Notes under the pieces: generated by a model | The model's database searches: none | What the model was told of the DNA's origin: nothing | The model's input: the letters and a program-made list of their open reading frames with translations, nothing else | Shown here: positions 1,875 to 23,295 of the stretch, piece after piece | How positions within the stretch are numbered: position 1 is the stretch's first letter | Layout of the letters: the number at the start of each line of letters is the position of its first letter | DNA from: Octopus bimaculoides | Lineage: Eukaryota | Direction of reading: 5' to 3' | DNA length: 39,804 nt | Assembly (NCBI RefSeq): GCF_001194135.2 | Contig: NC_068995.1 | Span: 36,947,063 to 36,986,866, forward strand | Program-made: the position numbers and the translations under genes

Positions 1875-1876
<2 letters not shown>

Positions 1877-1954
<78 letters not shown>

Positions 1955-1985
1955 ACACACACGCATACACATACACACATGCATG
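1877..1985. repeat. (CA)n microsatellite, representative of many (CA)n, (TA)n, (GA)n, (CTAT)n, (CATA)n, (CTTT)n and (CAT)n tracts in the window
   Basis: Direct reading; several of the N gaps are bounded by such tracts. Confidence 0.95.
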
Positions 1986-3112: not shown

Positions 3113-3154
<42 letters not shown>

Positions 3155-3297
3155 GAGAGAAAGAGAAAGAGGGAGGGAAAAAAGGAGATAAATATTAAAA
3201 CGTCTGATGTCAAGTATGTCAGCGTCGAATCAGCGACGCCAAAACAGGGGGCGCGTAAATGGCTGTGCCGAAACGGCTGCGACAAAACGTCTCATAC
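2802..3297. mobile_element. Degenerate MITE-like element enclosing (GA)n/(CA)n tracts
   Basis: Imperfect terminal inverted repeats gaatgagactattgggcgcagc / gctgcgacaaaacgtctcatac (17/22) plus inverted subterminal ttggcgcagctgatt / aatcagcgacgccaa. Confidence 0.4.
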
Positions 3298-3680
3298 TCA
3301 AAGACAAATAAGTCATTCATGCAGAAGTAACAATATGCTCGTTGTAGATTTGAATATTCGATCAATTAGCAGGTTGTTCAATAGCTTATCTGACCCTGTT
3401 ATAATGTTTAACTTCTGTTAATATGAAATTCAGTTGTTGTTGGTAGACCCAGGGTCAACTCTTATGGAGCAAACCAACGATGACAAATATTTCAGTCGTG
3501 ACAACCTCGTGTTTTGAAGGACATATCTAGAGTTAAATTATACAATGTGCCATTTCCTTTTTTAAAGATGTTAGGATGCGATTTGTGAGAGATTCGGCAG
3601 CTATTTATTACAAACCGAGCAATCAAGATGAATCTCGCTTGCTGGCTTGGTGAAATACAGTTGTAAATAAATGTTCTCAC

Positions 3681-3962
3681 CTGATTTATCAGCGATGAAA
3701 AATGTTAACTTCTCTCCTTTTACTTTTTGTAAATCAGGATCATCTGCAACTACGTTCCCTATGAATATACCAGCTTTGTTGTTTTCTAATACATAGAAGT
3801 AAAAACTTCGTTTTATAGTTGGTGGGTGATTTAGCGGAACAAGTATAGTGATATTTGTACTACTGGAAAGACCGGGCGCTCCATTATCTATAGCTTGTAC
3901 CACAATGTTATACTTTGTTTCAACTGGTTCTCGAACAAGATTATCAGCAACGGTTATATCAC
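3681..3962 (-). CDS. Long cadherin, exon type A, cassette 3 (282 nt, phase 1-1)
   Basis: tttttcag|GT acceptor, TCAG|gtgaga donor; GDITVADNLVREP...AIDNGAPGLSSS...VPLNHPP...VLEN...ADDPD...IADKS. Confidence 0.93.
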
Positions 3963-4184
3963 CTGAAAAACAAATATTTAGATAAATCAATAATAAATAA
4001 TAATTTATTAAAAATCACAAAAATCACAACTTTGAAGAAGGGCGTAATTGATTATACCAATTCGCACATATTTTGAAAAATTCAGGATGATTCGGGAACT
4101 AGCGAAGCTGAACATATTCAGCCTATTAAAACAAGGAAATTAATTGAAAAGCCAACTTAACTAGAAATGCAGAATAAAAATTAC

Positions 4185-4437
4185 CTTTGTCTTGGTCAAT
4201 TTTGAACTTGCCAAAACCTCCATCTTTGAGCAAATATGTAATTCGGTTATTCTGAAGACTGCAATCTGAGTCGATGGCACTAACGGAACCAACTTTTGTT
4301 CCTACTTTTGCTGTGATTGGAGTTTTAAATTTATACTGCTTTTTAAATATTGGAGCATTGTCATTTATATCCTGGATGACAATTTTAAGACTGGTTTCGG
4401 TTTTATGGCCAACACCTCCTTGGTCAATGGCAGTTAC
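4185..4437 (-). CDS. Long cadherin, exon type D, cassette 2 (253 nt, phase 0-1)
   Basis: CT-rich tract then ttcaag|GTA acceptor (AAG, less common), AAAG|gtaatt donor; VTAIDQGG...IQDINDNAPIF...AIDSDCSLQNNRITYLL...GKFKIDQDK. Confidence 0.88.
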
Positions 4438-5444
4438 CTTGAAGACAGTGAGAGAGAGGGAAAGAGAGAGAAAGACGTTGAAATCATACAATATAAAATT
4501 GGTGCACGTGTTGTGTGTATGTGTATGTGTGTTCTAGATGATAAAATGAAGATGATACTGAGAGAAGGAGAGAGAGAAATAGAGAACGAGGAAGAGAGGA
4601 ATTTCTAATGTAATAAATAAACGAACAAGAAATTGAATGAGAGATGATGAGAGAAAGAAAGAAAGAAACAAGAGGAGAGGGAGGGAGAGAGAGAAAGGGG
4701 TTGGTGTTGGTCATGTGAATGCTTGAACAGCGTTTCGGCACTGATTAAATAGAATGATAAGACAGATAAACAATTGGAAGAGAGGAAATACATTGTCAGT
4801 CTTAGCTGAATGGGGTAATTGTATTTGTAGAAGTAGAAGAGAAAACGTGAGAGGAAGAGAAATGAAAAAGAGCGAGAAAATAAAACTAAGAGAAAGGCAA
4901 CTTGACTCTGGTTATTCAAAACAATAGCGACAGCTATCAGATGTCAAAAGGTGTGTGTACAACAATCTCATAAAGTAAACAAAAGTGAATTGAGAAATAA
5001 CTCATCATGGCCAGAGGCATGTATCTAAATAACATAGACAAATACAAGTACGTCAAATAACATACAACAAATTCTTGACTTATTGGAGTTATTTTCTCCT
5101 CTAGAGGCTGTATCATAATTACCAAGTAGCAATTATGACAAGGTCCACTTGAGAATGGTAGATAATCACAATTACGTGTTCTCCAAAGCTGACATACTAG
5201 GCCAGGCTTACTGTTTGGAGATATGAGAACAACAGTTGACACGTATTTCTGGCTCTATTGCCGTTATCAGCTCTACGATTGTCCGATCTTATCTCCAGTA
5301 GCCATCGGACTCGGATTTATGCAAAAAAGAGGAGAAAACATTTATGACCTTGGAAATTTTGACAAGGAAATTCTTTAGTAAAATTTCTCACGATAAATAA
5401 TGAAGATAACAAAACCAAATCCAATCAAAGTAATGTACTCCTAC

Positions 5445-5618
5445 CTTCAAGTCATATGTGTCTACAACATCACAGCGAATGTTAACCGGATGTTTCACAC
5501 GAATTGTACCTTCTAGAACGTTAAAGGTGAACAGCTGAGCACCTCCTCCTGATAAGTTGTAGACAATATCCCTGTTATATTCCTCAGCATCTGCATCGGT
5601 TGCAATAATTTCCTGATT
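5445..5618 (-). CDS. Long cadherin, exon type C, cassette 2 (174 nt, phase 0-0); no corresponding ORF in the supplied track
   Basis: tattttcag|AAT acceptor, AAG|gtagga donor; NQEIIATDADAEEYNRDIVYNLSGGGAQLFTFNVLEGTIRVKHPVNIRCDVVDTYDLK; same length as exon 17807-17980. Confidence 0.9.
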
Positions 5619-5809
5619 CTGAAAATATAAAAATTAAATTGATGACATAAAAATATGCGCAGCTTTCTAAAAACTTACTTTTAGATCTATGGGAGTTTCA
5701 TTTTTGATTTTAAGAGGTTGATGTTTAGTACCAAATTTTAAGAATTAAGCTGGTAAGAAATAAATTCTTTACTGATTGGGACGTTATCTGCCTAGCATAG
5801 GTAACCATG

Positions 5810-6125
5810 TGGAAGCGCAATGGCCCAGTGGTTAGGGCAGCGGACTCGCGGTCGGAGGATCGTGGTTTCGATTCCCAGAGTGTTTATTGAGCGAAAAACA
5901 CCTAAAGCTCCACAACACTCCGGCAGGAGGTGGTGGTGACCCCTGTTGTACTCTTTCTCCCCAACTTTCTCTAACTCTTTCTTCCTGTTTCTTGAGTAAC
6001 GTTGCGATGGACTGGCGTCCCGTCCAGTTGGGGGGGGGGACACCTACGCCATAGAAACCGGGAAACCGGGCCCATGAGTCTGGCTAGGCTTTAGAAGGGC
6101 GCATAAAAATAAAAAATAAAAATAA
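5810..6125 (+). mobile_element. tRNA-derived SINE with V-domain-like body
   Basis: A box TGGCCCAGTGG, B box GGTTTCGATTCC; GCGATGGACTGGCGTCCCGTCCAG at about 6004-6027; (AAAAAT)n tail. Confidence 0.7.
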
Positions 6126-7444
6126 GTAACCATATTAAACGATATGATTGTATTTCTACCAGTGGCTAATTCAACTGAGACAGGTCTACGATTTGCTATT
6201 TGCTGAAACACGTGATGGTTTGAACAAAAGATCTATGAGCCACCAAAGCCACTTCTACATTGTCGTTCAATCTGCTATATACTTACACAAACCATATCAT
6301 AAAATCAATGAAAAGAAAGACATATTAGATAATGTTGTCCTAGACGTACTGTATATAGTATATCTGAAAGATGGGTTAGTTACAGTAGGAACACCTTTCA
6401 TCTGTTTGATAAGGACAGTCCCGGAGTTAACAACAAACACAATAAGAAAAACCTAAACAGCAACAAAAGATATATAATGCAACGGTTCACAGTGATATCT
6501 ACTCATGGCATTAAGTAGATAAAAGATAAAATGTCTTTATTTAGGATACTAATTTATTACAGATAAAACTCTATTTTTCTAAATAATGCAGGATTAAAGA
6601 AATGAAAAAAGATCTATGAACTTGAATTACAATACCCCTGCCAGTCATTTCCTTTCTGTATACACAGCAGCTATCTTTAATATAAATAATGCGTTGTGAT
6701 GTAGCATTCCTTAGTGGTATATCTATTATTTGTTACTGCGTAATATTCGGTTTTTAGAAAAATATTTTGATACTTGAATGGAAAGCAGATATACCTGTCT
6801 GTGCATATCTGCGAAAGCATCAAATGATCTTCCCACAAACCAAAAGACCAATACAGCCAGAGTATTCAAATATCGGCTTTTGCAGTATTGAGCTGTTAGC
6901 AAGGAAATTTGATTTCAGCCTTTAGGCACAACTCGTTTATCGCAGATGTTTTATTACACGCAGTTCTTTAACTTGACAACATCGAGAGAAGATACATTAA
7001 TCACTTTGTAGATAAGATCATTATTATCTTTAGTTTAGAATTAAAAGTTTTTGGTCCAAATTCCCTCGAGTACTATATGCATATTTGGAATGTCTATGTA
7101 ATACTAGATCAAATCGATAGAAATTTAGTTCTAGATGTAAATATCAAAATATGCTTCACCTCTAAAGATTGTGTTAATAGACCGGGAATTGTAATATTTT
7201 GTGTTGCCGAGAACTCTTCTTTTTCAGACTGGAGCGAACACGTTACAATGAAGTAGAGAAATTTGAAAAGACAACACGAAACCGGTTATTTCTCAAAATA
7301 CAATGTTTATATACCAAAAAGATTTTCTAACATTTTTCTAACATTTTTCTGACATAATTTAAATATATACTTTAACCATGTAACACAAGCCTTCTGTAGT
7401 TTTTTCACTCTTATTATCTTTTATATATATATATATATATACAA

Positions 7445-7800
7445 ATGTATCTTTTATCTTTTACTTGTGTCAGTCAATAAACTGTGGCCATGCTGGGGTA
7501 CCGCCTTGAGATTTAGTCCACTGAATCGATTCCAGTGCATTTTTAAAGTCTAGTACTTATTCTATTAGCTTCATTTGCTAAACCGCTAATTTATGGGGAC
7601 GTAAACAGACCAACATCAGTTGTGAATCCGTGGTGGTGATGAGAAAAACACAGACACAATGACGCACACATACACACACACGGCTTTGGTGACCCGAGGT
7701 TATAGTAGAAGACACTTGGCCAAGGTTCCGTACAAGGGAACTGAACCTGGAACCAAGTGGTTGGGAAGCAAGCTTCTTACCACACAGCCATCCTTGCTTA
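7445..7800 (-). mobile_element. Major tRNA/CORE-like SINE with internal (CA/TG)n
   Basis: Reverse complement of the full-length copy at 25055-25474. Confidence 0.8.
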
Positions 7801-8479
7801 TATATNNNNNNNNNNNNNNNNNNNNNNNNNNNNNNNNNNNNNNNNNNNNNNNNNNNNNNNNNNNNNNNNNNNNNNNNNNNNNNNNNNNNNNNNNNNNNNN
7901 NNNNNNNNNNNNNNNNNNNNNNNNNNNNNNNNNNNNNNNNNNNNNNNNNNNNNNNNNNNNNNNNNNNNNNNNNNNNNNNNNNNNNNNNNNNNNNNNNNNN
8001 NNNNNNNNNNNNNNNNNNNNNNNNNNNNNNNNNNNNNNNNNNNNNNNNNNNNNNNNNNNNNNNNNNNNNNNNNNNNNNNNNNNNNNNNNNNNNNNNNNNN
8101 NNNNNNAGAACTATATAGTTGTTTGAGTTCTTCACAGCAGAAGAGGCAAATTTCTCTCAGCGAACATAATGTTGTTTATTACTAGAATGAACATTAAAAT
8201 GACGATGATGAAGGTTAATTATATGAACTGCACTTTCACCGGCTGTCAAACGATGGTGGGGAACAGACACTGACTCAATGATGCACGCCCGCCCGCCCGC
8301 ACACATACGACGGGCTTCCTTCAGTTGTTTCGTATACCAAATCCAAGACTTTGATCGGTCCAAAGCTGAAGACACTTGCCCAAGGTGCTATACAGTGTCA
8401 ATAAATCCATGTTGGGAATTAAGCCTCTTGTCACACAGCCACATCTGCGCCTATACTGGATAAAATTGTTGCATGTATT

Positions 8480-8660
8480 TTGTTCTTGTCTCTGAACGAA
8501 GGCAAGTGCTGCTCATAACCGTCATTGAAGGTATTTTCTGTCATTTCAATGTAAAGTTTTATAGTTCCGTTCAAGCCCGAGATGCTGGCCTTGTACACCA
8601 GTTGTTCTTCTTGACACACATTGTCCAGAGATTGATATCGTAGAATCTACAAATTCCAAA
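8480..8660 (-). mobile_element. Penelope-like GIY-YIG endonuclease remnant
   Basis: SGQC/..LVYKASISGLNGTIKLYIEMTENTFNDGYEQHLPSF resembles CxxxxVVYKAxxxxxxxKxYIGxTExxFKxRYxxHxxSF. Confidence 0.55.
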
Positions 8661-8995
8661 TCGTTGTAGGCTGTTCCTAATGTTATTATTCGTATTATAA
8701 TTGAAAATAATCGACCGCATGACGAAGAGGCAACTATATTTAACTTAAACTGTATTTCTATTAAAAATCTTCTGATATTTATGCGAGTGTGGGCAGTGGA
8801 TATCTATGTTTAAAAAATGTTCTAGCTATATTTGCAGCTAATGCAGTGTTAAGCACCCATTCTCCCTATTCGATTCTAGAGTCACTCTCTTTTCCTCCCT
8901 ATATATATATATATATATGCTGCTACTATGAATGTCTGTGTATGTTGCGCCTGTGTGGTGCTTGTTCACAACTGCTTAACGACCGTCGATGATTT

Positions 8996-9155
8996 GCTTA
9001 TGAAGTTTATCGGCTCGGCTAAAAGAGACCGATAGAATAAGTACTAAGTATAAAAGAAAATAAGTACTGGGGTCGATTTGTTTGATTTAACCATTAAAAG
9101 TGGTGCCCTAGCATGACCGCAGTCTAATGACTAAAGTAAATAAAAAATAAAAGAT
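8996..9155 (+). mobile_element. 3' half of the major SINE
   Basis: aaagagaccgatagaataagtact...ggggtcgattt...gcatgaccgcagtctaatgact...aaaaga. Confidence 0.7.
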
Positions 9156-9202
9156 TACAATGAATACAACTACGTATAGGACGACGTTGAAAGATAACTC
9201 AC

Positions 9203-9444
9203 CAATTTCACAACTCCAGACAAATCAGTTTCGGTATAAGTTCCGTAATATCCCACAGTTGATTTAAAGATTGGCTCATTATCGTTGATATCTTCAACTA
9301 TTACCTTCACAGTGGTACTAACTGTATGGGTCGGGGCACCGATGTTTATAACAGAAACGGTGAAAATATATTGTTCCTGTTGTTCACGGTCAAGAAGTGA
9401 TTGCGTTTGGATCAAACCAGTTTCAGAGTTCATGGTAAACATAC
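9203..9444 (-). CDS. Long cadherin, exon type B, cassette 2 (242 nt, phase 1-0)
   Basis: tcttgcag|GT acceptor, TTG|gtgagt donor; MFTMNSETGLIQTQSLLDREQQEQY...VEDINDNEPIF...SGVVKL. Confidence 0.93.
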
Positions 9445-10442
9445 CTGCAAGAATAGATAATTCAGACATATTTCATACGAGAGTTCTGAAAATATATTAT
9501 ATATTTATATGAGTAAATACTCTCAAAACAGTTGTAAGCAATTATATACACCAACATGTACAATATTATACATTTATTAGGTGATTCTTTCATCACCACT
9601 AAGGCAAGTATGTTAAAGCCTATGTTCAGTTGATGATGTCAGAATAGAACTGAAGCATTCGAGGAGTTATCTCACCATACTTATAAAAGTGAAATAATAT
9701 TAAAATAATATCACTCTTCGACCAATAATGTTTTTTCTTCAGTGCATAGTTATTCCTTTCTGCTATAGCCATGTGTTTTGTTTTGTCGTAGTACTCAACA
9801 GAGGCGAGAACATTTTAATGTCAAGGATACTTAGATATTTGAAGACTATTTTCTTCACGCATAAAACATTTTGACACGTAGGAGTGAATAAATTAATTCA
9901 AATACACAACGATAAATTTACGTCCATCTAAAATTAAAACAATGTGTCTGAAAGGATAAGCATATATATATTTGGATAGAGTTGTTAGATATGGTATTAA
10001 CAAGTTTTTATTTGATTTATATATTTATTATTATCAGTTGCTACTACTATGGCCACCATAACTACTGGAGTTTAAGGTTTGGATTGTTCTGAAGATTTAA
10101 ATTGCGTAATATTTGTAATATATTCAATAACTTGATGCTGTCTAATCAAAAGTAATGTAACAATGATATCAATGCTAAGAATAAACATTTTTGCAGCAAA
10201 ACTTCATGTAATCTTCTGAAAGTTGGATTATTCGCGCTCATGTAAAATGAAATGTTTTGTGCAGAAACACAACAGAACACTCGAAGCAGATTTGAACTCA
10301 GACCAATGAGAAAGTCATCGAACATATTATCTGCCTAGCCATTTTGCTCTCTCTCTCTCATATTTTCCCCTAGTATTTTATCAACCTTAAATTGAGTAAA
10401 AGTGAAATTTACATAAGAACACCAAATACTAAACAAATATTC

Positions 10443-10660
10443 GTTTCTACCATAGGCACAAGACTTGAAATTTTAGTGGGAGAGTTTAGCCGATTACATC
10501 GACCGCAGTACTAAACTGGTACTTATTTTATCAACATCGAAAGGATAAAAGGTAAAGTCGACCTCGGCGGAATTTGAACTCAGGAACGTAAAGACGGACG
10601 AAATGCCGCTAAACATTTTTTCGGCGCGGTAAAGGGTAATGATTCTGCCAGCTCGCTGTC
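10443..10660 (-). mobile_element. tRNA-derived SINE (gtcgacctcggcgg family)
   Basis: Near full-length copy matching the other family members. Confidence 0.8.
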
Positions 10661-10791
10661 TTATAGAAAAACAAATATTGAGTATCAACTATGGCTGCCT
10701 TTAGACAGCCATAGAGATCGTTATAGAAAATTGAGCCGACGATTGTATAGTTCTTGGTTTAATGAAAATCAATCTCCTGTGCAAGAATAAA

Positions 10792-11071
10792 CACCATATT
10801 TACTTGTGTATAAGTCACCCCCGTGTATAAGTCGTACTCGTGTATAAGTCGCCTTCCTTATTTAGTATTAAACCTTGGTACAAAACTTCCCCCTCATAGT
10901 TTTAGCTTTACTTCATCTATAAGTTACCCCCTCAGTTAAGTGTGAAGTCTGGGTACAAATTTTTTCCCTTCGTAATTTTAGCTTTGCCCCATGTATACGG
11001 CGCACCCTAGTTTTTGTCTCAGTTAAAATCAAGTATAAAATATTGCTACTTATAAACGAGTAAATATTGTA
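10792..11071. mobile_element. pogo/Tigger-like MITE
   Basis: Termini caccatatttacttgtgtataagtc ... ctacttataaacgagtaaatattgta; internal gtgtataagtc repeats. Confidence 0.6.
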
Positions 11072-11160
11072 AATTCACACAAAGAGAAACATACACACAG
11101 ATACACATAGACACACACCATACATACAACTCGCGTGCATACACATACGTAAGAGATTAC

Positions 11161-11442
11161 CTGTAATATCTGATATGACGTAGACAATTTCTTCTTGTGG
11201 ATTTTGATTCATATCAGGATCGGTCACTGTAATTTTCCCTATTTCAGTGGTGGTTGTGCTGTTTTCTTTGACAAAGAATACATAAGTGTCATTCACGATT
11301 GGTGGTTTGTTCAGCGTCACACGTATCCTCACCTTTGCGAAACCAGAAAGACTCGGTTCACCAGTGTCAAATGCTTGGATAACCAGGTTGTATTCTTCCC
11401 CTTGGGTATTGTCTGTCAGGTTGCTGGAGACATATAATTCAC
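11161..11442 (-). CDS. Long cadherin, exon type A, cassette 2 (282 nt, phase 1-1)
   Basis: ttttcag|GT acceptor, ACAG|gtaatc donor; GELYVSSNL...AFDTGEPSLS...VTLNKPP...VKEN...TDPD...ISDIT; same length and phase as the other A exons. Confidence 0.93.
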
Positions 11443-11639
11443 CTGAAAAGAGATGACAAAAATGAAAAAAGTCAATAAAAGATATTTGCAGATAATTTAG
11501 TGTCATGAGAGAAAAGAAATTATTTTATCAGTACAAAGGCAGTAATATGAGGCTGAGACAACATTGCACCATAATATAATACAAGCAAAGGTAAAATTCG
11601 AATTTCGAAGGCATTGGTGAAACTCTGTTTCAGCTATAG

Positions 11640-12071
11640 TCTTTTATCTTTTATGTTTTACTTGTTTCAGTCATTGGATTGCGACCATGCAGCCATGCTG
11701 GGGCACTGCCTTCAAGGATTTAGTCGAACAAAATAACCTCACTAGTAGTATTTTGTTTTTAGGTTTAGTATTCTATAGATGACTTTTGCCGAACTTCTAA
11801 GTTACGTGGACGTAACCAAATCCACACCGTTGTGAAGCAGTGGTGGGGTCAACACGAACATTAAGACAAACACACACATACATGCATAAACACACATATA
11901 CAACATATACGATGAGCTTTCACACAGTTACTGTTTACCAAATTTACTCACAAGGTATTGGTCATTTCGGAGCTATAGTACAAGAGACATGATCGTGGTG
12001 TCTCGCAGTGGACTGAACCCGACACCCCGTGGTTGCAAAATAGGTTTCTTAACCACGTAGCCATACCTGCA
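11640..12071 (-). mobile_element. Major SINE, full length
   Basis: Tail cttttacttgtttcagtcatt... through head ...aaccacgtagccatacctgcac. Confidence 0.8.
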
Positions 12072-12473
12072 CTATTAAGTTTTTTTTCTACGATTTTTCA
12101 CTTTACTAATTTACCATCCCAATCTGTCCCCCACCTCAACGCATATGATAATAAAAAATAGTCTTGTGTACCTAACATAATTTCTTGCATTGCTCAACAT
12201 TAGCAAACTTAAAAAACAACGTTAAAGAAAATAATTCTAGCAAAAACAGTGAGAATAAAAATAATTTTAAAATTTAAAAGCAATTTTCTCAATGGAATCC
12301 CAAATTTCTTTTGGAATTTTGAAAATTTCCTATTGAGATCGAGGTGGAGATATTTTCAAAGATTAAGAATTTCAGCTTTAAATTATATTAGTATCGAAGT
12401 ATTTTGCCGAAATACCATATCAAAATGAAGGTATGTTGTTGATTGGATAAAGTGTAACATTATTACTGATAAT

Positions 12474-12536
12474 AATAATAATAATATCCCTAGCAGTTAT
12501 TCTATAAGAATAACTGCTAGGGATGTTATTATTATT
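12474..12536. repeat. 30-bp-arm inverted repeat with 3-nt loop
   Basis: aataataataatatccctagcagttattct-ata-agaataactgctagggatgttattattatt; one mismatch (12485/12525). Confidence 0.9.
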
Positions 12537-12984
12537 TGTTTCATAAGAAAATAATCGAATTAAAAAGGAACTGAACGAAAGCATATTTAATGAATGCCAA
12601 ATCAGATTATACATTCAGTAAAAGAGTAATCAATGTTTTTTTCTAATTAGACATCAATGAGAGACCACTTCGCACATGCTTCGTCATATTAAAACTATCC
12701 AGTGAAAGAATATAATTTAGCAAAATGCATTTTTGGTGGTAGAGAGTTCGGGAACTCATGAAAAGCTATTCTAAGAAAGCACCTACATAACAACTTACAA
12801 TTGAATTGGTGAAAGTATGTTTAATGCTTTGAGGAATAAAATAAAAGCCTAAGGGCAGATATAGGGTAGGAAAAAGTACTGGTTGTTGACGAAATATTAA
12901 ATTTAACTTGGCAAAAGCAGGAGCTGAAGTTTTGGTAGTATCTGTCTATACATGAGGACGGGATTGCATTATATTTTATTGTCA

Positions 12985-13403
12985 AAGATACATAAATATC
13001 TTTTCTACTATAAGCACAAGGTCTGAAGATACATAAATATCCTTTCTACTATAAGCAAAGGTCTGAAGATACATAAATATCGATTTCAAATTTTGGTATA
13101 AGGCCAACAATTTCGAGGGAGGGGTTAAGACGATTACATCGACCCCAGTGTTTGACTAGTACTTATTTTTATCGATTCCGAAAGGGACGAAAGGCAAAGT
13201 CGGCCTCGGCGGAATTTGAAATTAGAACATAAAGACGGACGAAACGCTGCTTAGAATATTTCCCGGCGTGCTGACGATTCTGCCAGGTAGACGCCTTAAA
13301 AGGAGAATTTGACCTCGCCGGAATGTGAACTCATGCCGCTAAGCATTTTGCTCGGCGTGCTAACAATTCTGCTAACTCGCAACTTTGAAGATACATAAAT
13401 ATC
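12985..13403 (-). mobile_element. SINE plus extra head fragment and two short SINE-tail fragments, interleaved with four copies of a 16-18 bp target sequence
   Basis: aagatacataaatatc at 12985-13000 and tgaagatacataaatatc at 13024, 13064 and 13386; SINE body about 13082-13297. Confidence 0.75.
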
Positions 13404-14581
13404 AATGACCTGATTGTAAATGTCAAATATCAATGTGGTCATTTTGACTGTAAATAACCGTTAGAGATCCAATTCTTTAATGCAAGTAGGGGTCCATTTA
13501 ACAATAAACGTTATTCCTTAGTAACCTGAATCAGTCAAAATTTCAAACCTTCGACGGTACACTGCTATAGGAACAGAATCAATAACAGCAACAACAATAA
13601 ATAAGTTAACAAAAAGAAATAAGCCGTAACAACTGAAAAAAAATTATTATATTAAAGCAAAAATAAAATTAGATAGTTAAAACTTGACAATCAATTTGAT
13701 TTTAACATGAAAATTATACATTAGTTTAGTTCTAATTGTTTCTTCTTTGTCTTGTATAATTTCACCTGTAATTTTCTCTTTTACTTTCTGAGATCGTTAA
13801 ATTAATTACTCCGCTGATTTAATCAATTGCTTCCGCCCATCAATACTTTTAGTTTTGTACCAATATTAGAAATCATTATTACAGCTAATTTATCCCCGAT
13901 TTTGTATTTATGATTAAGGTTGTTTGGTCGAATTAGCGATTTGCCAGCATTGTTTTGGATTTTAACTAAATATGTCTTTCACCCTCCTAAAGTCAATGAA
14001 AATTAGCAACAATTAAATATATTCGACTCTACCATTGAAGACAATGTATATATACGGCATAAACTAACGGATAAGAGTAGCAATAAATAAATACGCATAA
14101 AAGAATATTATACCACCTCAGACAATATATAAATATAATAAAACTAAAATGATATAAATAAAACATAAAAAAATGAAATTCGTTGTTAGTGACGGAAGCA
14201 GTATTAGTTCAAATGAACGATCTGTATATCATACTTGAAGTATACATACTGTTGAAAACCTTCTAAACTGCAGTATTAGTCTCGAGAAAACATCTCTCAT
14301 ACTTGCTACTGATGAAGCTAAAAAGAAATCAGAAATCCGGACTTAACTATACTACCGCCGCTTCTGGGCAATTTTCGCCTGCGAATGATATATTTTAGTG
14401 TTTTTTATCCTATACATCTATAAAGGATGATTTCGAGACGAATATTGCAGATTAGAAGACATTCAACAGTATACATGATTTAATTATGATATACAGATAG
14501 CTAATAAAAAAATTAATCTTTTAAGAATGAAAACAAAAAAAATAAAAATAAAAATGAAACTCCGAATTAAATGGTATGAAA

Positions 14582-14804
14582 TACACAAATGGATACTGAA
14601 AAGTTCCTGGCTTTGGGTAAAAAAAAATACAGAAGGATCAGTAAATTATGATTTTGTTCAGCATATCCCCCTCGCAGATTCAAACACTTATTGCAGTGAT
14701 CCTTCAGTTTTTCTAAGCCCTGTAAAAGAACTCGGAAGGTTTGGCTTCCAACCAGGCCTTTCGCGACACCCTTAAAGACAGGAACTTTTCAGCAACTCCT
14801 CGTA
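14582..14804. mobile_element. Mariner-type MITE
   Basis: TIRs ...ctgaaaagttcctggcttt / aaagacaggaacttttcagca..., TA ends; same family as 20033-20480. Confidence 0.75.
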
Positions 14805-14817
14805 TGTCTGTTATTAC

Positions 14818-15061
14818 CTGTGATGAAATCAACTCCAAACTTGCCGGCGGATCCTTGGATCAATACGTACAAAACCCGATTGTTCCTTCTAGTAGCATCA
14901 CTATCTTGTGCTTCGACTTTACCAAATTTAGTACCAATTGAAGTAAGAGGTCCAACTTGGTAGGAATAAGTCTTTGGAAATACCGGTGGGTTATCGTTGA
15001 TGTCTTCGACGTTAACAACCAGTTTTGACTTATTTCGGTGTATTCCATCATATACTACAAT
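14818..15061 (-). CDS. Long cadherin, exon type D, cassette 1 (244 nt, phase 0-1); no corresponding ORF in the supplied track
   Basis: ttcatcttag|ATT acceptor, ACAG|gtaata donor; IVVYDGIHRNKSKLVVNVEDINDNPPVFPKTYSYQV...AQDSDATRRNNRVLYVL...GKFGVDFIT. Confidence 0.92.
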
Positions 15062-15089
15062 CTAAGATGAATTATGAAGAATAAGAAAG

Positions 15090-15120
<31 letters not shown>

Positions 15121-15135
15121 CAAAAAAAAAATCTA

Positions 15136-15202
<67 letters not shown>

Positions 15203-15270
15203 GTGTGTGCATGTATATGTGTGTGTTTTGTGTGTGTGTATGAGAAGCTAACTTCTACACCATATGGTCT

Positions 15271-15547
15271 CGTGATACACACGGACTCGGGTTTCTGGGT
15301 AGTAACCCGTCATCATCGCGTGACAATCACTGGTTAGGGATGAGAAGTGATATTTCCAATGCAAATATATATGCTTCTTCCAGTGGCAAAAAGTCGCTGA
15401 TCTCGAAAAAGGAGAAACAAGCAATAAGAAATCTCTGAGCGAGATATAAACAGTAGCAGCACGAAATATCACTTCTCATCCTTAGCCGGTGATTGTCACG
15501 CGCTGATGACAGGTTACTACCCAGAAACCGGATCCGTGTGTATCATG
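15271..15547. mobile_element. Foldback/MITE with about 85-bp inverted arms
   Basis: 15271-15355 pairs with 15464-15547 with few mismatches. Confidence 0.75.
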
Positions 15548-15754
15548 TCAGGTTAGATATGGGAATGGTGATTTCCTTTTGCAAATACTGATAGGGCACA
15601 GACGGTGTGTCATTAGCTAGCTGGAGGAGACGTCTTCCTGGGGCTATAAACTACAGTAGCATCGTCCCATATGGGTCAGCCACATTTAGGTGGCAAATAT
15701 ACTTCACGATGTCGTGCTGCTTCTGTTTATATCTCGCTCAGAGATTTATTATTG

Positions 15755-15806
<52 letters not shown>

Positions 15807-16768
15807 CAAAATAGAGTGAAAAAGCTACAGAAGACTTGTGTTATATGGTTAAAGAATATATTTAAATCGTTATGTTAGAAAAATGTTATAAAATTTTGCG
15901 TATAGTAACATTGTTTTTGGAGAAATAACCAGTTTCGTATTTTCTTTTCAAATTTCTCAAATTTCTTTACCGATATTGCGTTATCTCTTCGCTATGATGT
16001 GAAGTATGAGAGTTCCAGATAGGTGATGGTAATCAGGGATTTTTTCGGTATAAGGGAGGTAATCATAAATGTTGGGATGACTAGGTTTTATTAATTTAAC
16101 AGGATTTGGTTTAGAAAGGATAGAATGTTAGAAATGGTTAGGTTCTGCTTTATATTTTTTTCAATGAGGTAAGTTCCCTTGTTTAAAAATGCTAGAAATG
16201 GTTAAGTTTTGACTTATATTTTTCAATGAAGTAGGTTTCCTTATTTAATCTAACTTGTGTTGGTGTTCCAATGGCACATTGATAAAATGGAAAGATTACA
16301 AATTGTGGTAGCAGTTGCTTTGCTTATTTCTCAAGGTGTTCACCAAAGAGTATCATTCTGTATTCTGGGAATGCAATCTGCTGTCGGTGTAGAGGGCATC
16401 TGCGTCTAAGCGATAATCCTGTGCATTCCCATTTCTAATCAGGATCCAAGGCTCCTTAATTGGAATTTCAACAGTAACAGGGTATTTTTGTATGTATGTA
16501 TGTATGTATGTATGGATGGATGGATGGATTATGTATGTATATATGTATGTATGCATGCATACATACATACACACAGACACACACATACACACGTACAGAG
16601 GCATGCATAGTATTAATAACAGGCTATAAGATTATGATTTATATGTTTGTCATTAACTGTATGAGTGTTGTGTTCATGATCAACATGTCATGTCTAAATC
16701 TATTTAATCGCACCATAAATTCCATAAGTAAAGATAATTCTGCAAGGAGCGGGAACACTGTTTAATTC

Positions 16769-16950
16769 TTTCTAATATAAGGACAAGGCCTGAAAGGTTT
16801 TGAGGAGGGGGCTAGCCGATTACATCGATCCCAGTGCTCGAATCCGAAAAGATTAAATGTAAAGTCGATCTCAGCGGCATTTGAATCAGATCGTAAGGTC
16901 GGAACTAATGCCATTAAGTATTTTGTCCGGTATGCTAGCAATTCTGTCAG
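16769..16950 (-). mobile_element. SINE (gtcgacctcggcgg family), internally deleted
   Basis: gattacatcgatcccagtg...aaagtcgatctcagcggcatttgaatcaga. Confidence 0.65.
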
Positions 16951-17647
16951 CTCTCCGTCTTTGGGAGCACTGTTTAATTAACAAATGTTTTGTTAGTTTG
17001 CAAGGCTCTCTCTATAATTTTGAATTATGGACAAAAATTCTTCACCTCAAAGTCGAATCAGTATGAAGATGAGGTGATGTAAATTCTAACGCAAAATCAG
17101 CAACAGATTACATGAAAATACAAGAATAGAAGAAATAAAATAATGATTTCNNNNNNNNNNNNNNNNNNNNNNNNNNNNNNNNNNNNNNNNNNNNNNNNNN
17201 NNNNNNNNNNNNNNNNNNNNNNNNNNNNNNNNNNNNNNNNNNNNNNNNNNNNNNNNNNNNNNNNNNNNNNNNNNNNNNNNNNNNNNNNNNNNNNNNNNNN
17301 NNNNNNNNNNNNNNNNNNNNNNNNNNNNNNNNNNNNNNNNNNNNNNNNNNNNNNNNNNNNNNNNNNNNNNNNNNNNNNNNNNNNNNNNNNNNNNNNNNNN
17401 NNNNNNNNNNNNNNNNNNNNNNNNNNNNNNNNNNNNNNNNNNNNNNNNNNNNNNNNNNNNNNNNNNNNNNNNNNNNNNNNNNNNNNNNNNNNNNNNNNNN
17501 NNNNNNNNNNNNNNNNNNNNNNNNNNNNNNNNNNNNNNNNNNNNNNNNNNNNNNNNNNNNNNNNNNNNNNNNNNNNNNNNNNNNNNNNNNNNNNNNNNNN
17601 NNNNNNNNNNNNNNNNNNNNNNNNNNNNNNNNNNNNNNNNNNNNNNN

Positions 17648-17700
<53 letters not shown>

Positions 17701-17806
17701 CATCATCATCATCACCACCAACAGTATAAGTAGCGGCAGAAACAATAATAACAACATCAATACAAATAGAAGCATCACTAGCAACAAGAACAATATTATA
17801 ATTTAC

Positions 17807-17980
17807 CTCTAATATGTATTTGTCTTCAGTCTCGGCATCAAACTGTGAAGTCTTTTTAACTTTGATGATGCCTGTCTTTGGATGAATCTTAAACAACGAA
17901 GCATTGGATCTCTTCAGAAAATAACGAACTTTTCTGTTTATAGGGTTCTTGTCTTTATCTTCAACTGAAAGGCTGGGACT
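17807..17980 (-). CDS. Long cadherin, exon type C, cassette 1 (174 nt, phase 0-0)
   Basis: tttgatatcag|AGT acceptor, GAG|gtaaat donor; SPSLSVEDKDKNPINRKVRYFL...FKIHPKTGIIKV...FDAETEDKYILE (DxD, FxIxxxTGxI, DxE). Confidence 0.9.
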
Positions 17981-18027
17981 CTGATATCAAAAGAAAAATC
18001 TCACAACAACAAGAACAACAATAATAA

Positions 18028-18440
18028 TGGTTTCAAATTTTGGCATAAGGTTAGCAACTTCGAGTGAGTGGTACTAGTCGATCACATCGATCCCAGTGCT
18101 CAACTGCTACTTATTTTATCGATTCTGAAAGGATGAAAGCAAAATCGACCTCGGCGGAATTCGGACTCAGAACATAAAGACGGGAAAAATGCTGCTAAGC
18201 ATTTTGCTCGGCGTGCTAACGATTCCTATTTCTTTATTGCCCACAAGGGGCTAAACATAGAGGGGACAAACAAGGACAGACAAAGGGATTAAGTCGATTA
18301 CTTTGACCCCATTGCGTAACTGGTACTTAATTTATCGACCCCGAAAGGATGAAAGGCAAAGTCAACCACGGCGGAATTTAAACTCAGAACATAATGTCGG
18401 GCTAAATGTCGCTATGTATTAGGCAAAAAGCCAAAATTTT
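18028..18440 (-). mobile_element. Two tandem SINEs with the same head family and different tails
   Basis: 18028-18225 has the ...gccaaaatttgaaacc tail; 18226-18440 has the ...ccttgtgggcaataaagaa tail. Confidence 0.8.
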
Positions 18441-18601
18441 AGCAGAAGGGCTTTCCTGCAAAGCTTTACGTGTAGAGCCCACTTTCTCCAAGGCCACTTT
18501 TGCAGCGAACGTCCCAGGTCTAAGACAGTCACATCTGATGACTGTAGGTTTATCAGACATATGCACATTTTACAGTTATGCACTTAGTTTATTCATATGA
18601 T

Positions 18602-18936
18602 GAAGGCGCATGGCTCAGTGGTTAGAGCGTCGGGCTCACAATCATGAGGTAGCGAGTTCGATTCCCAGACTGGGTTATGTGTTGTGTTCTTGAAGAAGAA
18701 GCTTTCTTTCCTGTTTCTCCATTTCATTCAGCTGTAGAAATGAATTGCAACGTCACTGGTGCCAAGCAGTATCGGCGTTTGCTTTTCCCTTGGATAATAT
18801 CGGTGGCGTGGAGAAGGGAAGCTGATATGCATGGACGACTGCTAGTCTTTCATAAACAACCTTGCTCAGACTTGTGCTTCGGAGGGGGAAATTTCTAGGT
18901 GCAATTCCATGGTCAGTCATGACCGAAGGGGGTCTA
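18602..18936 (+). mobile_element. tRNA-derived SINE, distinct family
   Basis: A box TGGCTCAGTGG, B box AGTTCGATTCC, followed by a non-tRNA body. Confidence 0.65.
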
Positions 18937-18968
18937 TCCCCTTTATTCATATGATCGATACACACGCA

Positions 18969-19019
<51 letters not shown>

Positions 19020-19066
19020 TGCCTGACANNNNNNNNNNCGCACACAGACATACTGCCTGACACACT

Positions 19067-19112
<46 letters not shown>

Positions 19113-19135
19113 TACACACGCAGTGAAGTACATAC

Positions 19136-19383
19136 CAAAGATAAGATTACGGGGCCAATATTCGTCTGGTTTTCAACAACTGACGCCTTATACACCTTAG
19201 AGGACAGTATTGGTGGATTGTCATTGACATCTTCAACAACCACTGTAACTGTTGCTGTTGCTGTTGTTGGAGCTGGATCATTGTCAAAAACCTCTACTCC
19301 AAACTGGTACGTTGACATTGACTCCGTGTCCAATTCTGCTGTCGTTACGATGATACCACTCTTATTATTTATTTGGAAAGGCA
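19136..19383 (-). CDS. Long cadherin, exon type B, cassette 1 (248 nt, phase 1-0)
   Basis: ctttcag|TG acceptor, TTG|gtatgt donor; PFQINNKSGIIVTTAELDTE...VEDVNDNPPIL...VVENQTNIGPVILSL with canonical LDxE and DxNDN; in frame with exon 22286-22567. Confidence 0.93.
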
Positions 19384-19534
19384 CTGAAAGAAAATTTAAG
19401 AACTGAAAGAAATCATCATCGGAGAATTTAGATGAAAAAAAACTTGTCTTACACCAGGCAAAATAATCAAGTTTAGAATATATGACTTGGTTTAAAGGTG
19501 AACCTACTCACTACACAGACGACGTCTTAGCTTA

Positions 19535-19914
19535 GTGGCACTCCGTCGCTTACGACGTCGAAGGTTCCAGTTGATCCGATCAACAGAACAACCTGCTCGT
19601 GAAATTAACGTGCAAGTGGCTGAGCACTCCACAGACACGCGTACCCTTAACGTAGTTCTCGGGGATATTCAGCGTGACACAGTGTGACAAGGCTGACCCT
19701 TTGAATTACAGGCACAACAGAAACAGGAAGTAAGAGTGAGAGAAAGTTGTGGTGAACGAGTACAGCAGGGTTCGCCACCATCCCCTGCCGGAGCCTCGTG
19801 GAGCTTTAGGGTGTTTTCGCTCAATAAACACTCACAACGCCCGGTCTGGGAATCGAAACCGCGATCCTATGACCACGAGTCCGCTGCCCTAACCACTGGG
19901 CCATTACGCCTCCA
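19535..19914 (-). mobile_element. tRNA-derived SINE with Nin-like conserved body
   Basis: Head shared with 5810-5992; body ...gtggagtgctcagccacttgcacgttaatttcacgagcagg...atcaactggaacc...gacggagtgcc; the domain name is from memory. Confidence 0.7.
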
Positions 19915-20032
19915 CGATGTCTTAGCAATCAATAGATTACACACAGTATGACGCCGTGAAACAATAGGCTTCACACTGCAGAGCTGACTGTCGCAATAAC
20001 AACAATTATATGGCGAGTCAACGTATATGGTA

Positions 20033-20480
20033 TATAGGGGGTGCTGAAAAGTTCTTCGCTTTGGGTAAAAGAAAATACAAGAGGATCAGTGAATTATGAT
20101 TTTATTCAACATGTTCCTCTCTTAGATTCACACACTTACAGCAGCGGTCATTCAGTTTTTGTAAGCCTTGTGAAAGAACTAGGAAGGTCGGGCGTCCAAC
20201 CAGACCTTTTGCGATACCCTTAAAGCCGAGAACTTTTCAGCACTTTCTCATGTATATATAGACGAGGAGGTGCTAAAATCTTCCTGGTTTTGGATAAAAG
20301 AAAATACAGGAGTACCAGTTAATTATGATTTTATCCAATATATTCCCATGTCAAATTCACACACTTATTGCAACGGCCCTTCAGTTTTTCAAGCCCTGTA
20401 AAAGAACTCGGAAGGTTGGGCCTCCAACCAGGCCTTTCGTGATTCCCTTAAAGCCAGGAACTTTTCAGCACCCCTTCGTA
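20033..20480. mobile_element. Two adjacent mariner-type MITEs
   Basis: 20033-20253 and 20260-20480, each with gggtgctgaaaagttc...gaacttttcagcac termini, separated by (TA)n. Confidence 0.8.
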
Positions 20481-21103
20481 TATTTTGAGTTTGTCTGATG
20501 AGAAATAGCGGTTCCCATGACCATCTTTCCACAATCTTAGGGAAGAAGAAACCATCACATCTTTTGGATTATTTTCAGGTCAGAGACTTGGTGGAAATGC
20601 TTGCCACAGAGTGCGCTCCGTTCACGGTACCCAAGCGGTTAGTCAAACTGGACAACGGATTAAGCCTTCCAATCCAGTAACAAGTCCAATCCACCCGATG
20701 AACTTTCGTATATTCTCCATCTACTTATTTTCAGTCAAAGTTAGGGTCGATTGGCAGCTATCGAATAAGACCATTGTCCAAGATCCCCTGCAACTGCGCC
20801 AATCATTATTGACCGATTTCTCTCTGTCTTTCTTTTTCTCTTTGCAATACAGTGTCCACTTACACTTGAGTTCGGGTCAGTTGAGTGTTTATATGATGGC
20901 AAAGTCAAACACGGCGATGTTTGAACTCAAAACGTAAAGAGTCAGAAGAAATGCTTCTAAATATTTTGTCAGGCGCGGTAACGATGTTGTCTGATCGTCA
21001 GCGATATAGTCTATTATAATGATAACTGCTAGATCTGTTCACATATATATTCATGAATGCACCCATGACCACACTACACCGCACCAGACCAGACCAGACC
21101 ATA

Positions 21104-21155
<52 letters not shown>

Positions 21156-21437
21156 NNNNNNNNNNNNNNNNNNNNNNNNNNNNNNNNNNNNNNNNNNNNN
21201 NNNNNNNNNNNNNNNNNNNNNNNNNNNNNNNNNNNNNNNNNNNNNNNNNNNNNNNNNNNNNNNNNNNNNNNNNNNNNNNNNNNNNNNNNNNNNNNNNNNN
21301 NNNNNNNNNNNNNNNNNNNNNNNNNNNNNNNNNNNNNNNNNNNNNNNNNNNNNNNNNNNNNNNNNNNNNNNNNNNNNNNNNNNNNNNNNNNNNNNNNNNN
21401 NNNNNNNNNNNNNNNNNNNNNNNNNNNNNNNNNNNNT

Positions 21438-21505
<68 letters not shown>

Positions 21506-21509
21506 TCCT

Positions 21510-21553
<44 letters not shown>

Positions 21554-22285
21554 TCGTTTATTCTTCCATATATATGAACAGGATATCATTTAATCTGTAT
21601 AACAACGGACCACGGTCTGGTATTCATAATGATTTTTTTACTTTTATTCTTATCTATAGTCTAAAATGCTTTATCTTCTCTTTTTCCTAGCCACCAGACT
21701 GTGTTTATGCAATAAAACCAGCAATACTGTTATAGAAGTAAATTCATTCAATTACAGAATAACATTCTTTTTACAACAATTGGTTATTTGCCATTTGTAA
21801 ATTGCAGTGTAGGAGCCAGAGTTAGATAAACATAACAGATTGGAGAATTATTACTCTTGCTGTGGCCATATATTCTTATAATCTGAGCTATATTATCTAT
21901 TATCTTAAGATTTAAAGTTTGAAACAGCCGACCGCTATTCTAAGATAAAGAATTTACTGATCCGAATTTATGAGATGGGTTAATGACGACGCAGAAGCAT
22001 TTTTGTTAGTTCAATCTTAACACTTTAAAGATGGTAAGAGTGTTTTTTGCGAAACATTTTTGGCTGCTCTGTTGAGTAAATCGAGTGACTGTGTCGAAGA
22101 AGTTACTTTGTTGTTTAAACTTCATGTTGGTTCTTAGTAAGAATTTACAATTACGTTTTTGAACCCTCTGATATAAGAATGGATTCTATTTATGTCCTGA
22201 TAAATGAAGAAGCATTTATCTCAAGTTTATGTCAATGGTATATATTCAACAGTGTTATGAATCTTAATGGAAAAATTACACTCAC

Positions 22286-22567
22286 CATCTTTGTCAATGA
22301 GGATGTACCATAACGTCTGGTTACTTCCTAACGCTCCGTCCGGATCTGTTGCATTTACTGAGCCAACTTTGGTTCCAATTTTAACACCTTCTGAGACATG
22401 AAAAATGTTGTTGGGTGCAATTGTGACTGGTTTATTTATTGGCACCTCAATCTTTACAATTGTGCTCGATGATAAAGAGGGGTAGCCAAAATCTATTGCT
22501 CTGATATTCAACTCATACAAACGTTTCTGTGGTTCTCTGGTCAAATCATCGGCAACTTTTATCTCAC
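22286..22567 (-). CDS. Long cadherin, internal exon type A, cassette 1 (282 nt, phase 1-1)
   Basis: ttttcag|GT acceptor and G|gtgagt donor; encodes GEIKVADDLTREPQKRLYELNIRAIDFGYPSLSSSTIVKIEVPINKP...ATDPDG...IDKD (end of one EC domain, start of the next). Confidence 0.93.
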
Positions 22568-23295
22568 CTGAAAAGTAAATAGAATAACAAAAGCGTCTTT
22601 TATTAAAGATAATTTGATACAAATATGAATATTATGATTTCAGTGTGCTAAGTGGACGACTTGGTAGCATATTTGTATTAAAATGGAAAAAACACCTGGC
22701 GTTTGTTAATCTGTTCTGTTTTAAACATTTACACATACATTTACTGTCTTAATATTCAGTTTTTTGTACTTCCAATATTTGCATAAAGGAAGCCATAACA
22801 ATGATATTCCTTTATATTTGGAAAACGTTAATGCAACTTGTGAATTTATGACAAATAATTTGCATACATGAGCAGTATTCTGAAATCCATATAACGTTAT
22901 GCAACGAAGAGTTAAAATGCATTCCTTCACAAGAAGAAAAAAAGGGGAAATATTCATAAATTATATAACAAAAATACTGATGTCGCAAACTGTGAAAGAA
23001 AATATTGATGGAAGTAAAACTTTGAAAAATATGTGAATGAAAGATACATTTTGGCTAATATTTTAATAGAAAATTGTACATTTTGACATGTCCTATTGCG
23101 TATGGTTATATACTTTCATTGGTGGAAAAATGTATATTTTTTCTGGAGTTCTAATGTAAAAGTTCATTGATAAAAAGTTTAGTAAATACTTTTTCTCTCC
23201 CAGAAACTTTATTTCACAATAACTTTCTTTTTATGCAGGTGCAAGAGTGGCTGTGTGTAAAAAACTCGCTTTACAACCACATGGTTCCGGGTTCA

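Follow-up and report, generated by a model that had tools for sequence, protein, structure and literature searches.

We report that a window of 39,804 nucleotides (nt) of the Octopus bimaculoides genome (NC_068995.1, positions 36,947,063 to 36,986,866; the whole stretch of DNA that was analysed, in whose coordinates all positions are given unless another locus is named) carries nine consecutive coding exons of one large cadherin gene. The exons lie on the minus strand and follow the order A-B-C-D-A-B-C-D-A, in which each A-B-C-D cassette encodes three extracellular cadherin (EC) domains. The explanation that we favour, at a probability of about 0.78, is that this large cadherin gene belongs to a gastropod and cephalopod family built from such 3-EC cassettes, with two cassettes and the first exon of a third contained in the window. 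As judged by sequence comparison, the closest relatives of the window gene are cephalopod sequences. The reference used throughout is P0001, the best database match to the window gene and the open reading frame (ORF) on L001, a 7.4-kb intron-free Logan contig (run SRR27666075) that is the transcript of another, related species.

The exons were located by tblastn, using the peptides of cadherin-like minus-strand open segments as queries, after which the flanks of the matches were read for splice sites. The queries returned nine exon-sized matches, and nothing further, in the entire window. Because the gene is on the minus strand, transcript order runs from high to low window coordinates. In the first cassette, exon A1 (22286-22567; 282 nt, phase 1-1) encodes the end of the domain termed EC-alpha, a non-canonical linker and the start of EC-beta; exon B1 (19136-19383; 248 nt, phase 1-0) encodes the remaining part of EC-beta, a canonical DVNDNPP linker and the start of EC-gamma; exon C1 (17807-17980; 174 nt, phase 0-0) encodes the middle of EC-gamma; and exon D1 (14818-15061; 244 nt, phase 0-1) encodes the end of EC-gamma, a canonical DINDNPP linker and the start of the next EC-alpha. 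The second cassette comprises exons A2 (11161-11442; 282 nt, phase 1-1), B2 (9203-9444; 242 nt, phase 1-0), C2 (5445-5618; 174 nt, phase 0-0) and D2 (4185-4437; 253 nt, phase 0-1). Exon A3 (3681-3962; 282 nt, phase 1-1) opens the last full cassette of the gene, the B, C and D exons of which lie beyond window position 1.

All nine exons are preceded by a pyrimidine tract and an AG acceptor and followed by a GT donor. Joined, they form 2181 nt that contain no stop codon in the coding frame, versus 50 and 75 stops in the other two frames, and the two complete cassettes measure 948 and 951 nt, or about 316 amino acids (aa) each. An earlier note, made from the letters of the window alone, had proposed nine exons splicing into one open 727-codon frame in this order, with A exons of 282 nt, C exons of 174 nt, cassettes of 948-951 nt and conserved phases (A 1-1, B 1-0, C 0-0, D 0-1); the splice sites and the stop-free frame agree with this proposal, and all of its lengths and phases were reproduced; the strand is not given in the note. 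The spliced protein matches the Pfam family Cadherin (PF00028) with an E value of 3e-94 in six stretches over 726 aa, and its tandem EC domains, 6.9 of which are encoded in the window, place it in the cadherin superfamily. A hidden Markov model (HMM) of the cassette, searched against all six frames of the window, matches only the nine exons; in particular, neither tblastn nor the cassette HMM found a D-type exon in 22632-39804 or a B-type exon in 1-3603. The nine exons are thus genuine, consecutive coding exons of a single large gene.

The periodicity of the exon chain is evident at the protein level. In global alignments scored with BLOSUM62, same-type exon pairs score 60-174, versus at most 52 for cross-type pairs, and the three A exons are 34, 43 and 34% identical in protein, in keeping with the range of about 34-44% counted by hand in the earlier note. 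Alignment of the window protein with P0001 gives diagonals at offsets of -3, 313 and 630, and the same holds for alignments with two gastropod proteins, P0002 (Gigantopelta aegis) and P0003 (Haliotis rubra). Matches to P0001-P0003 that are in register and non-orthologous lie about 316 aa apart and are 31-36% identical, as opposed to 23-26% for out-of-register matches, so that the diagonal spacing near 316 aa anticipated in the earlier note is seen as offsets against these three proteins. The exon scores, the register and the stop-free frame also agree with its central proposal, a tandemly repeated 4-exon, 3-EC cassette whose copies are old and all still open. At the DNA level, the only repeats found between cassettes or introns are microsatellites and elements resembling short interspersed elements (SINEs); the missing DNA similarity between cassettes is expected, because the duplicates are old.

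Exon borders fall inside the EC domains, and each cassette holds three EC domains of distinct type. Specifically, EC-alpha is formed by the second part of D and the first part of A, EC-beta by the second part of A and the first part of B, and EC-gamma by the tail of B, all of C and the first part of D. The linkers between EC-beta and EC-gamma and between EC-gamma and the next EC-alpha are canonical (DVNDNPP, DINDNPP, DINDNEP and DINDNAP), with DxNDNxP at W145, 254, 461 and 571 of the window protein. The Ca2+-linker motifs of cadherins (XEX, DRE, DxNDNxP and DxD) are thus present in the window protein, with DxNDNxP missing at every alpha-beta linker. In cassette 1, the codons at 22428-22442 (minus strand) encode PINKP in place of DxNDN, and the corresponding codons on the same strand encode the equally non-canonical TLNKP in cassette 2 (11303-11317) and PLNHP in cassette 3 (3823-3837).

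The same pattern recurs in a linker census over 35-41 cassettes of the mollusc family described below. In the beta-gamma linker D-x-N-D-N-x-P, the first D and the first N are present in 39 of 41 cassettes each, and the second D and the P in 41 of 41; in the gamma-alpha linker, D, N, D and P are each present in 35 of 35. The alpha-beta linker instead reads V-P-x-N-[KHQ]-P-P. The domain that precedes it deviates as well: in EC-alpha, the XEX position is occupied by P, S or I, with Glu in a single unit, and the Asp position of LDRE by T, L or V. The XEX Glu is present in 38 of 38 EC-beta and 37 of 41 EC-gamma domains. From these residues, the alpha-beta linker is predicted to lack most Ca2+ ligands. 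An AlphaFold2 model of one cassette (pLDDT 86.5) shows three EC beta-sandwiches, and a Foldseek search with this model returns cadherin ectodomains down to an E value of 1e-24, with PCDH15 EC5-7 and CELSR1 EC4-7 as the best matches. A PDB sequence search with the window protein gave only generic cadherin matches.

To place the gene, 1.84 billion representatives were searched with HMMER and the hits were then scored with the cassette HMM. One set of proteins stands out with best cassette scores of 320 bits or more, while no other cadherin scored exceeds 194 bits; the window cassettes, from which the HMM was partly built, reach 406 and 408 bits and so fall within the family at the 320-bit limit. 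The gastropod members, which are automatically named 'protocadherin Fat 4-like', include Lottia gigantea LOTGIDRAFT_229554 (V3ZIH1; 3166 aa, seven full cassettes), Haliotis asinina XP_067676185.1 (P0123; 2936 aa, six cassettes), Patella vulgata XP_055954782.1 (five cassettes and the terminal unit), two Haliotis rubra fragments (including XP_046553353.1) and a Gigantopelta aegis gene at CM027793.1:34.48 Mb (locus L002; about six cassettes). The cephalopod members include the transcript-derived P0001 (L001), which carries two frame breaks and is collinear with the window protein at 61% identity; it is a cephalopod member of the same gene.

The exon structure is shared across the family. The exons of the Gigantopelta gene, rebuilt from the genome, measure 273-294 nt for A (phase 1-1), 254 nt for B (1-0), 174 nt for C, seen three times (0-0), and 253-256 nt for D (0-1); they run in the order D-A-B-C over at least five cassettes and are followed by a 503-nt terminal exon with the stop codon. 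All eight junctions of the window fall at the same residue and in the same phase in the Gigantopelta gene. The comparison with other molluscs suggested in the earlier note, intron positions included, thus returned a gastropod gene with the same exon layout, phases and junction residues. Furthermore, a contig of a second cephalopod-like genome (L003) carries a D exon, an exon A' and a terminal exon in the same layout. Judged by these comparisons, the cassette layout is not an octopus invention: it is common to gastropods and marks an old, uncharacterised mollusc gene family. A literature search found no paper that mentions the Lottia accession numbers and none that connects molluscs with Ca2+-free linkers, and no description was found of the family, of its 3-EC super-repeat, in which a non-canonical linker recurs periodically, or of its end without a transmembrane (TM) segment; nor did the searches bring up experimental work on any of the gastropod genes.

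The 3' end of the octopus gene is itself represented in the protein databases. A0A0L8GQ41 of O. bimaculoides, a 450-aa 'Cadherin domain-containing protein', corresponds to the gene from C3 to the terminal unit, does not overlap the window exons and ends in ...FCCRVPC, like P0001, which ends in CCRVPC. O. bimaculoides and the species of P0001 share 78% identity in the terminal unit, which is also the better-conserved part between cephalopods and gastropods; this value is in keeping with the 61% of the window cassettes, which evolve faster. Residues ~56-115 of A0A0L8GQ41 are about 60 non-cadherin residues between the C- and D-type parts; because this insert looks like a retained intron, the annotation appears to be faulty as well as truncated. 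In Gigantopelta, about ten tandem copies of the 5' part of a B exon, spaced at ~130 or 240 nt, lie just upstream of a complete B exon (L002:8222-9951), and the public annotation splits the gene at this place into models of 2077 aa and 1128 aa; the copies are either an assembly artefact or a real micro-duplication. The protein with the top bit score in the library, P0121 of Nematostella vectensis (XP_048580321.1, 7285 aa), was rejected as a family member because it is FAT-like, with a TM segment and a recent 4-EC repeat. It has a long non-cadherin N-terminal region and about seven near-identical copies of a ~430-aa (4-EC) repeat, a much more recent cassette expansion in a cnidarian.

The architecture of the whole protein can be read from the relatives. 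L001 comprises a 5' untranslated region (UTR), a signal peptide (MWKIALLAITLCLSSTGNC), about 630 aa of non-periodic EC domains, a partial first unit and the cassettes, and its 3' end reads ...IQVIQSKQGRKVGCCRVPC, with a stop codon directly after ...CCRVPC and a 3' UTR. Throughout the family, the order is signal peptide (present in L001, Lottia and H. asinina), ~630-720 aa of non-periodic EC domains, four to about eight cassettes, a divergent terminal unit and a short Cys-bearing tail. By orthology with L001, the window covers the last three full cassettes before the terminal unit and the stop codon, the third of them through exon A3. The suggestion in the earlier note that the window is an internal part of a giant cadherin thus holds as to a large cadherin, but the position is close to the 3' end and not in mid-gene. 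At L001:3540-3570, the exact 3' end of a B exon is joined to the exact 5' start of an A exon, whereby at least C and D are skipped and the frame is shifted; this junction may stem from aberrant splicing, belong to an unproductive isoform or reflect a fault in the assembly. The second frame break, at L001:~330, follows closely on the signal-peptide region. On the assumption that the B-to-A junction skips C and D alone, L001 amounts to about 23 EC domains, and the Lottia protein, completed by orthology with Patella, to as many as ~35.

These totals bear on another way of reading the window. According to passages in the literature, octopus suckers show high expression of a cadherin gene that encodes more than 70 EC domains (PMC6062618; PMC9115989, citing Albertin et al. 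2015), so that the very long octopus cadherin mentioned in the earlier note does appear in these sources. If the window were part of it, the cephalopod gene would have about 20 cassettes, far above its gastropod relatives. Beyond the reported existence of such a gene, this reading could draw on the B-to-A junction of L001, which could skip many cassettes, and on the A+B unit upstream of it, which is the closest paralogue of window cassette 1 (42% over 168 aa) and would fit a cephalopod-specific expansion of middle units; cassette number does differ between lineages, and the orthologous 3' end in O. bimaculoides is annotated only as the 450-aa fragment. However, the sole near-full-length cephalopod transcript implies the ~23 EC domains given above, the gastropod relatives have about 6-8 cassettes and at most ~35 EC domains, and no octopus protein is among the long library matches, the ten longest of which are from Monosiga, Sycon or ENA/JGI contigs, with a Nematostella protein as the top match. 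We consider it unlikely, on balance, that the window belongs to the sucker cadherin.

The 3' ends of the family members point to a secreted protein. Like L001, the Gigantopelta, Patella and H. rubra models stop at the homologous place, each with a Cys among the last few residues. A hydropathy scan of the family members detected only N-terminal signal peptides, and the same scan detected the TM segment of a FAT-like control. No EGF or LamG domain occurs in the precomputed Pfam lists of P0001-P0003, and the 10 kb downstream of the Gigantopelta stop contain no further cassette-like exon. Since the stop after the terminal unit is homologous and neither a TM-like segment nor EGF or LamG domains are present, the family looks secreted, and the product of the window gene is probably secreted too, without a TM or cytoplasmic region, a feature that the earlier note had not foreseen.

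A run of about 32-34 EC domains characterises FAT and FAT4, where it precedes EGF and laminin-G modules, a TM segment and a cytoplasmic tail; the window exons might be read as part of an ordinary membrane-anchored receptor of the FAT4 or Dachsous type, with its EGF, LamG, TM and cytoplasmic exons located elsewhere. The automatic names of the gastropod relatives, a Pfam match to Cadherin_FAT4_N and a generic EC similarity of 27-31% to FAT4, CDH23 and PCDH16 all point this way. The orthologues of the window gene do not show this architecture, however: in a transcript and four gene models, a homologous stop directly follows the terminal EC unit and no hydrophobic segment occurs, the downstream sequence and the Pfam lists are as described, and the cassette-HMM scores sharply part the family from all FAT-like proteins. 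We therefore regard such a receptor as very improbable.

The continuity of the exon chain across the gaps of the assembly was assessed with the help of P0001. The window has a G+C content of about 36% and contains eight runs of N, four of them in the exon-bearing span and none of these four overlapping an exon: one in the A1-B1 intron (21156-21436, 850 nt from the nearest exon), one in the B1-C1 intron (19029-19038, within a (CA)n tract and 98 nt from the B1 donor), one in the C1-D1 intron (17151-17647, 160 nt from the C1 donor) and one in the B2-C2 intron (7806-8106, 1097 nt from the nearest exon). Long (CA)n tracts at 18953-19130, which starts about 25 nt past the B1 donor, and at 21097-21155 adjoin two of the gaps, and these two gaps are probably microsatellite read-through failures. 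The window protein aligns with P0001 over 721 residues at 61.4% identity with zero gaps and no indel at any of the eight junctions, and each window exon is 50-69% identical to its positional counterpart in P0001 (64% for A1), versus 24-47% for same-type exons of other cassettes. The order and number of the exons are thus right, and no exon is hidden in an N gap. Codon positions 1, 2 and 3 are 71, 77 and 40% identical between the window and P0001, and pN is 0.25 against a saturated pS of 0.79, a pattern that indicates purifying selection; by this measure, the exons of the window and of P0001 are selected coding exons of two deeply diverged species. Despite the four gaps in the span and the fragmented assembly, an origin of the A-B-C-D pattern in contigs mis-scaffolded or duplicated across N gaps, or in decaying pseudo-exons, can be dismissed as next to negligible, since the cassettes are just 41-52% identical in DNA, the introns share only SINE-like and microsatellite repeats, every exon has its positional counterpart in an independent transcript as best match, and all frames are open with the third-codon-position pattern of a selected gene.

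The age of the cassettes was addressed with neighbour-joining trees, rather than maximum-likelihood trees, built on distances derived from p-distances and with bootstrap. Cassettes 1 and 2 of the window each pair with their positional counterpart in P0001 at 100% bootstrap. Between classes, the terminal units of the cephalopod and the gastropods form one clade (100%), the last full cassette, that of A3, joins the corresponding cassette, again the last full one, of Patella, Gigantopelta and H. rubra (80%), and the partial unit at the start of the L001 array clusters with the first units of Lottia and H. asinina (98%). Cassette 2 adjoins the second-to-last gastropod cassette without bootstrap support, and cassette 1 takes no definite position. 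From these groupings we infer that, at a minimum, the last full cassette, the terminal unit and the first unit had arisen by the time gastropods and cephalopods diverged, and the middle of the array would have been remodelled or turned over afterwards. In H. asinina, four consecutive cassettes (residues 1294-2546 of XP_067676185.1) cluster together at 88% bootstrap and, judged by this clustering, are a lineage-specific expansion by whole cassettes, in contrast to the older, positional cassettes in the rest of the family; this is consistent with the growth in triplet steps that the earlier note had envisaged. On the simplest reading, the four exons and their introns would have been duplicated in tandem in the genome; because a cassette starts and ends in phase 1, its gain or loss is frame-neutral.

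Taken as a member of this mollusc family, the gene would encode a secreted, long extracellular chain of ~23 to ~35 EC domains. Two of every three linkers, with DxNDNxP, would be rigidified by Ca2+, while every third one, which reads V-P-x-N-[KHQ]-P-P and follows a domain that likewise lacks the XEX Glu and the LDRE Asp, would bind little or no Ca2+. An EC domain spans about 4.5 nm, and the predicted outcome is a chain of stiff 3-EC rods, each ~13-14 nm long, with hinges between them; as a matter of speculation, the conserved terminal cysteines may link chains to one another or tether them to a partner. A broader proposal, that molluscs at large have an undescribed class of secreted super-repeat cadherins without a TM segment, with stiff 3-EC segments, Ca2+-poor hinges, possible Cys cross-links and a length tuned by cassette number, and perhaps with the octopus sucker giant among them, is put forward tentatively and at well below even odds.

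Several points weigh against the placement of the gene in this family and the chain proposed for it. The window itself holds only 2.3 cassettes, with neither an upstream D nor a downstream B exon, and the period beyond it is taken from relatives. No own-species protein that covers the window exons is found in either protein library. The cassette count of L001 is a minimum, because the B-to-A junction skips at least C and D, and bootstrap support for an orthology by position between cassettes 1 and 2 and the gastropod cassettes is weak, below 60% in distance-based trees. In addition, the Ca2+ loss at the third linker, secretion, hinges and disulfide linking are all deduced from sequence. As to the libraries, no entry of the first protein match list exceeds ~1270 aa, hence full-length cephalopod models could not appear there; among the matches listed, nothing is more than 61% identical to the window protein, and in the representative library nothing exceeds 37% overall.

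If the proposed class exists, its design would be unusual. Cadherins are nearly always discussed as membrane adhesion receptors, and a conserved bilaterian cadherin of about 23-35 EC domains that lacks a membrane anchor and is built as a strict three-domain super-repeat, each repeat with one Ca2+-poor linker, would be nearer to a matrix filament than to a receptor. The match of cassette, phases and linkers across two mollusc classes also provides a clean example of frame-neutral growth by exon cassettes, in which ancient copies and the recent ones of Haliotis asinina are both visible. That repeat proteins can grow by exon-cassette duplication is known, and public annotations already include the gastropod genes; their 'protocadherin Fat 4-like' names are misleading, and several of the models are split or truncated. 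Should the window gene be the sucker cadherin, that gene would gain an evolutionary origin and a testable architecture.

Outside the exons, the window contains several mobile and repetitive sequences. On the plus strand, 23487-24415 holds ORFs of 222 aa and 102 aa without a Pfam match; the former (23487-24152) has more than 1400 relatives at E values of 1e-10 or below across metazoan assemblies, the best at 65%, including Plakobranchus, tephritid flies, a moth and a turtle, and probably represents a widespread transposon-borne protein, to judge by this distribution. Stop-broken transposase remnants of mariner type (Pfam Transposase_1, E 6e-16; 37620-38060, minus strand) and of ISXO2-like DDE type (E 7e-12; 38774-38959, plus strand) lie near the far end. 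The introns hold two families of short interspersed repeats of ~100-210 nt whose copies are 61-82% identical, one at 10472-10583, 13071-13280, 16798-16838 and 18018-18442 and the other at 14591-14801, 20039-20249 and 20268-20478, and translated copies of such repeats are present beyond the gene as well, among other places at 821-1147, 31022-31543 and 32750-32962. The repeats have no Rfam match and are not shared with the cephalopod-like contig L003.

Comparison with known systems sets the mollusc family apart in several respects. The gastropod proteins are alike in their 3-EC cassette, non-canonical every-third linker, terminal unit and TM-less end and, as tested in Gigantopelta, in the 4-exon structure and its phases; they differ from the octopus gene in sequence, at 33-40% identity to the window cassettes, and in cassette number, which is ~6 in Gigantopelta, at least 7-8 in Lottia and raised by further lineage-specific copies in H. 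asinina. The octopus cadherin with more than 70 EC domains is likewise a very long cephalopod cadherin, but, compared by EC count, it exceeds the ~23-35 EC domains of the relatives of the window gene. FAT, FAT4 and Dachsous resemble the family in their EC sequence, at the 27-31% given above, and in their long EC chains, where scattered Ca2+-free linkers let the chain bend; however, FAT and Dachsous are anchored by a TM segment and extend into a cytoplasmic tail, and FAT also has EGF and LamG domains, features that the mollusc family appears to lack, and the FAT-like proteins scored show no regular 3-EC super-repeat. CDH23, PCDH15 and CELSR1 are also long EC chains, and PCDH15 and CELSR1 provide the best structural matches to the modelled cassette, through EC5-7 and EC4-7 fragments that presumably include atypical linkers; unlike the mollusc proteins, they are membrane proteins, vary their linkers non-periodically and are only ~25-27% identical. 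Clustered protocadherins, which belong to the same superfamily and are expanded in octopus, carry six EC domains and a TM segment in one large variable exon, whereas the cassette described here divides its three EC domains among four exons of 174-282 nt, whose borders fall within the domains, so that the contrast drawn in the earlier note is correct on established knowledge. Titin and nebulin, although intracellular and of unrelated folds, offer a general analogy in that, as in the mollusc cadherin, a higher-order period is laid over a domain repeat and growth proceeds by whole cassettes.

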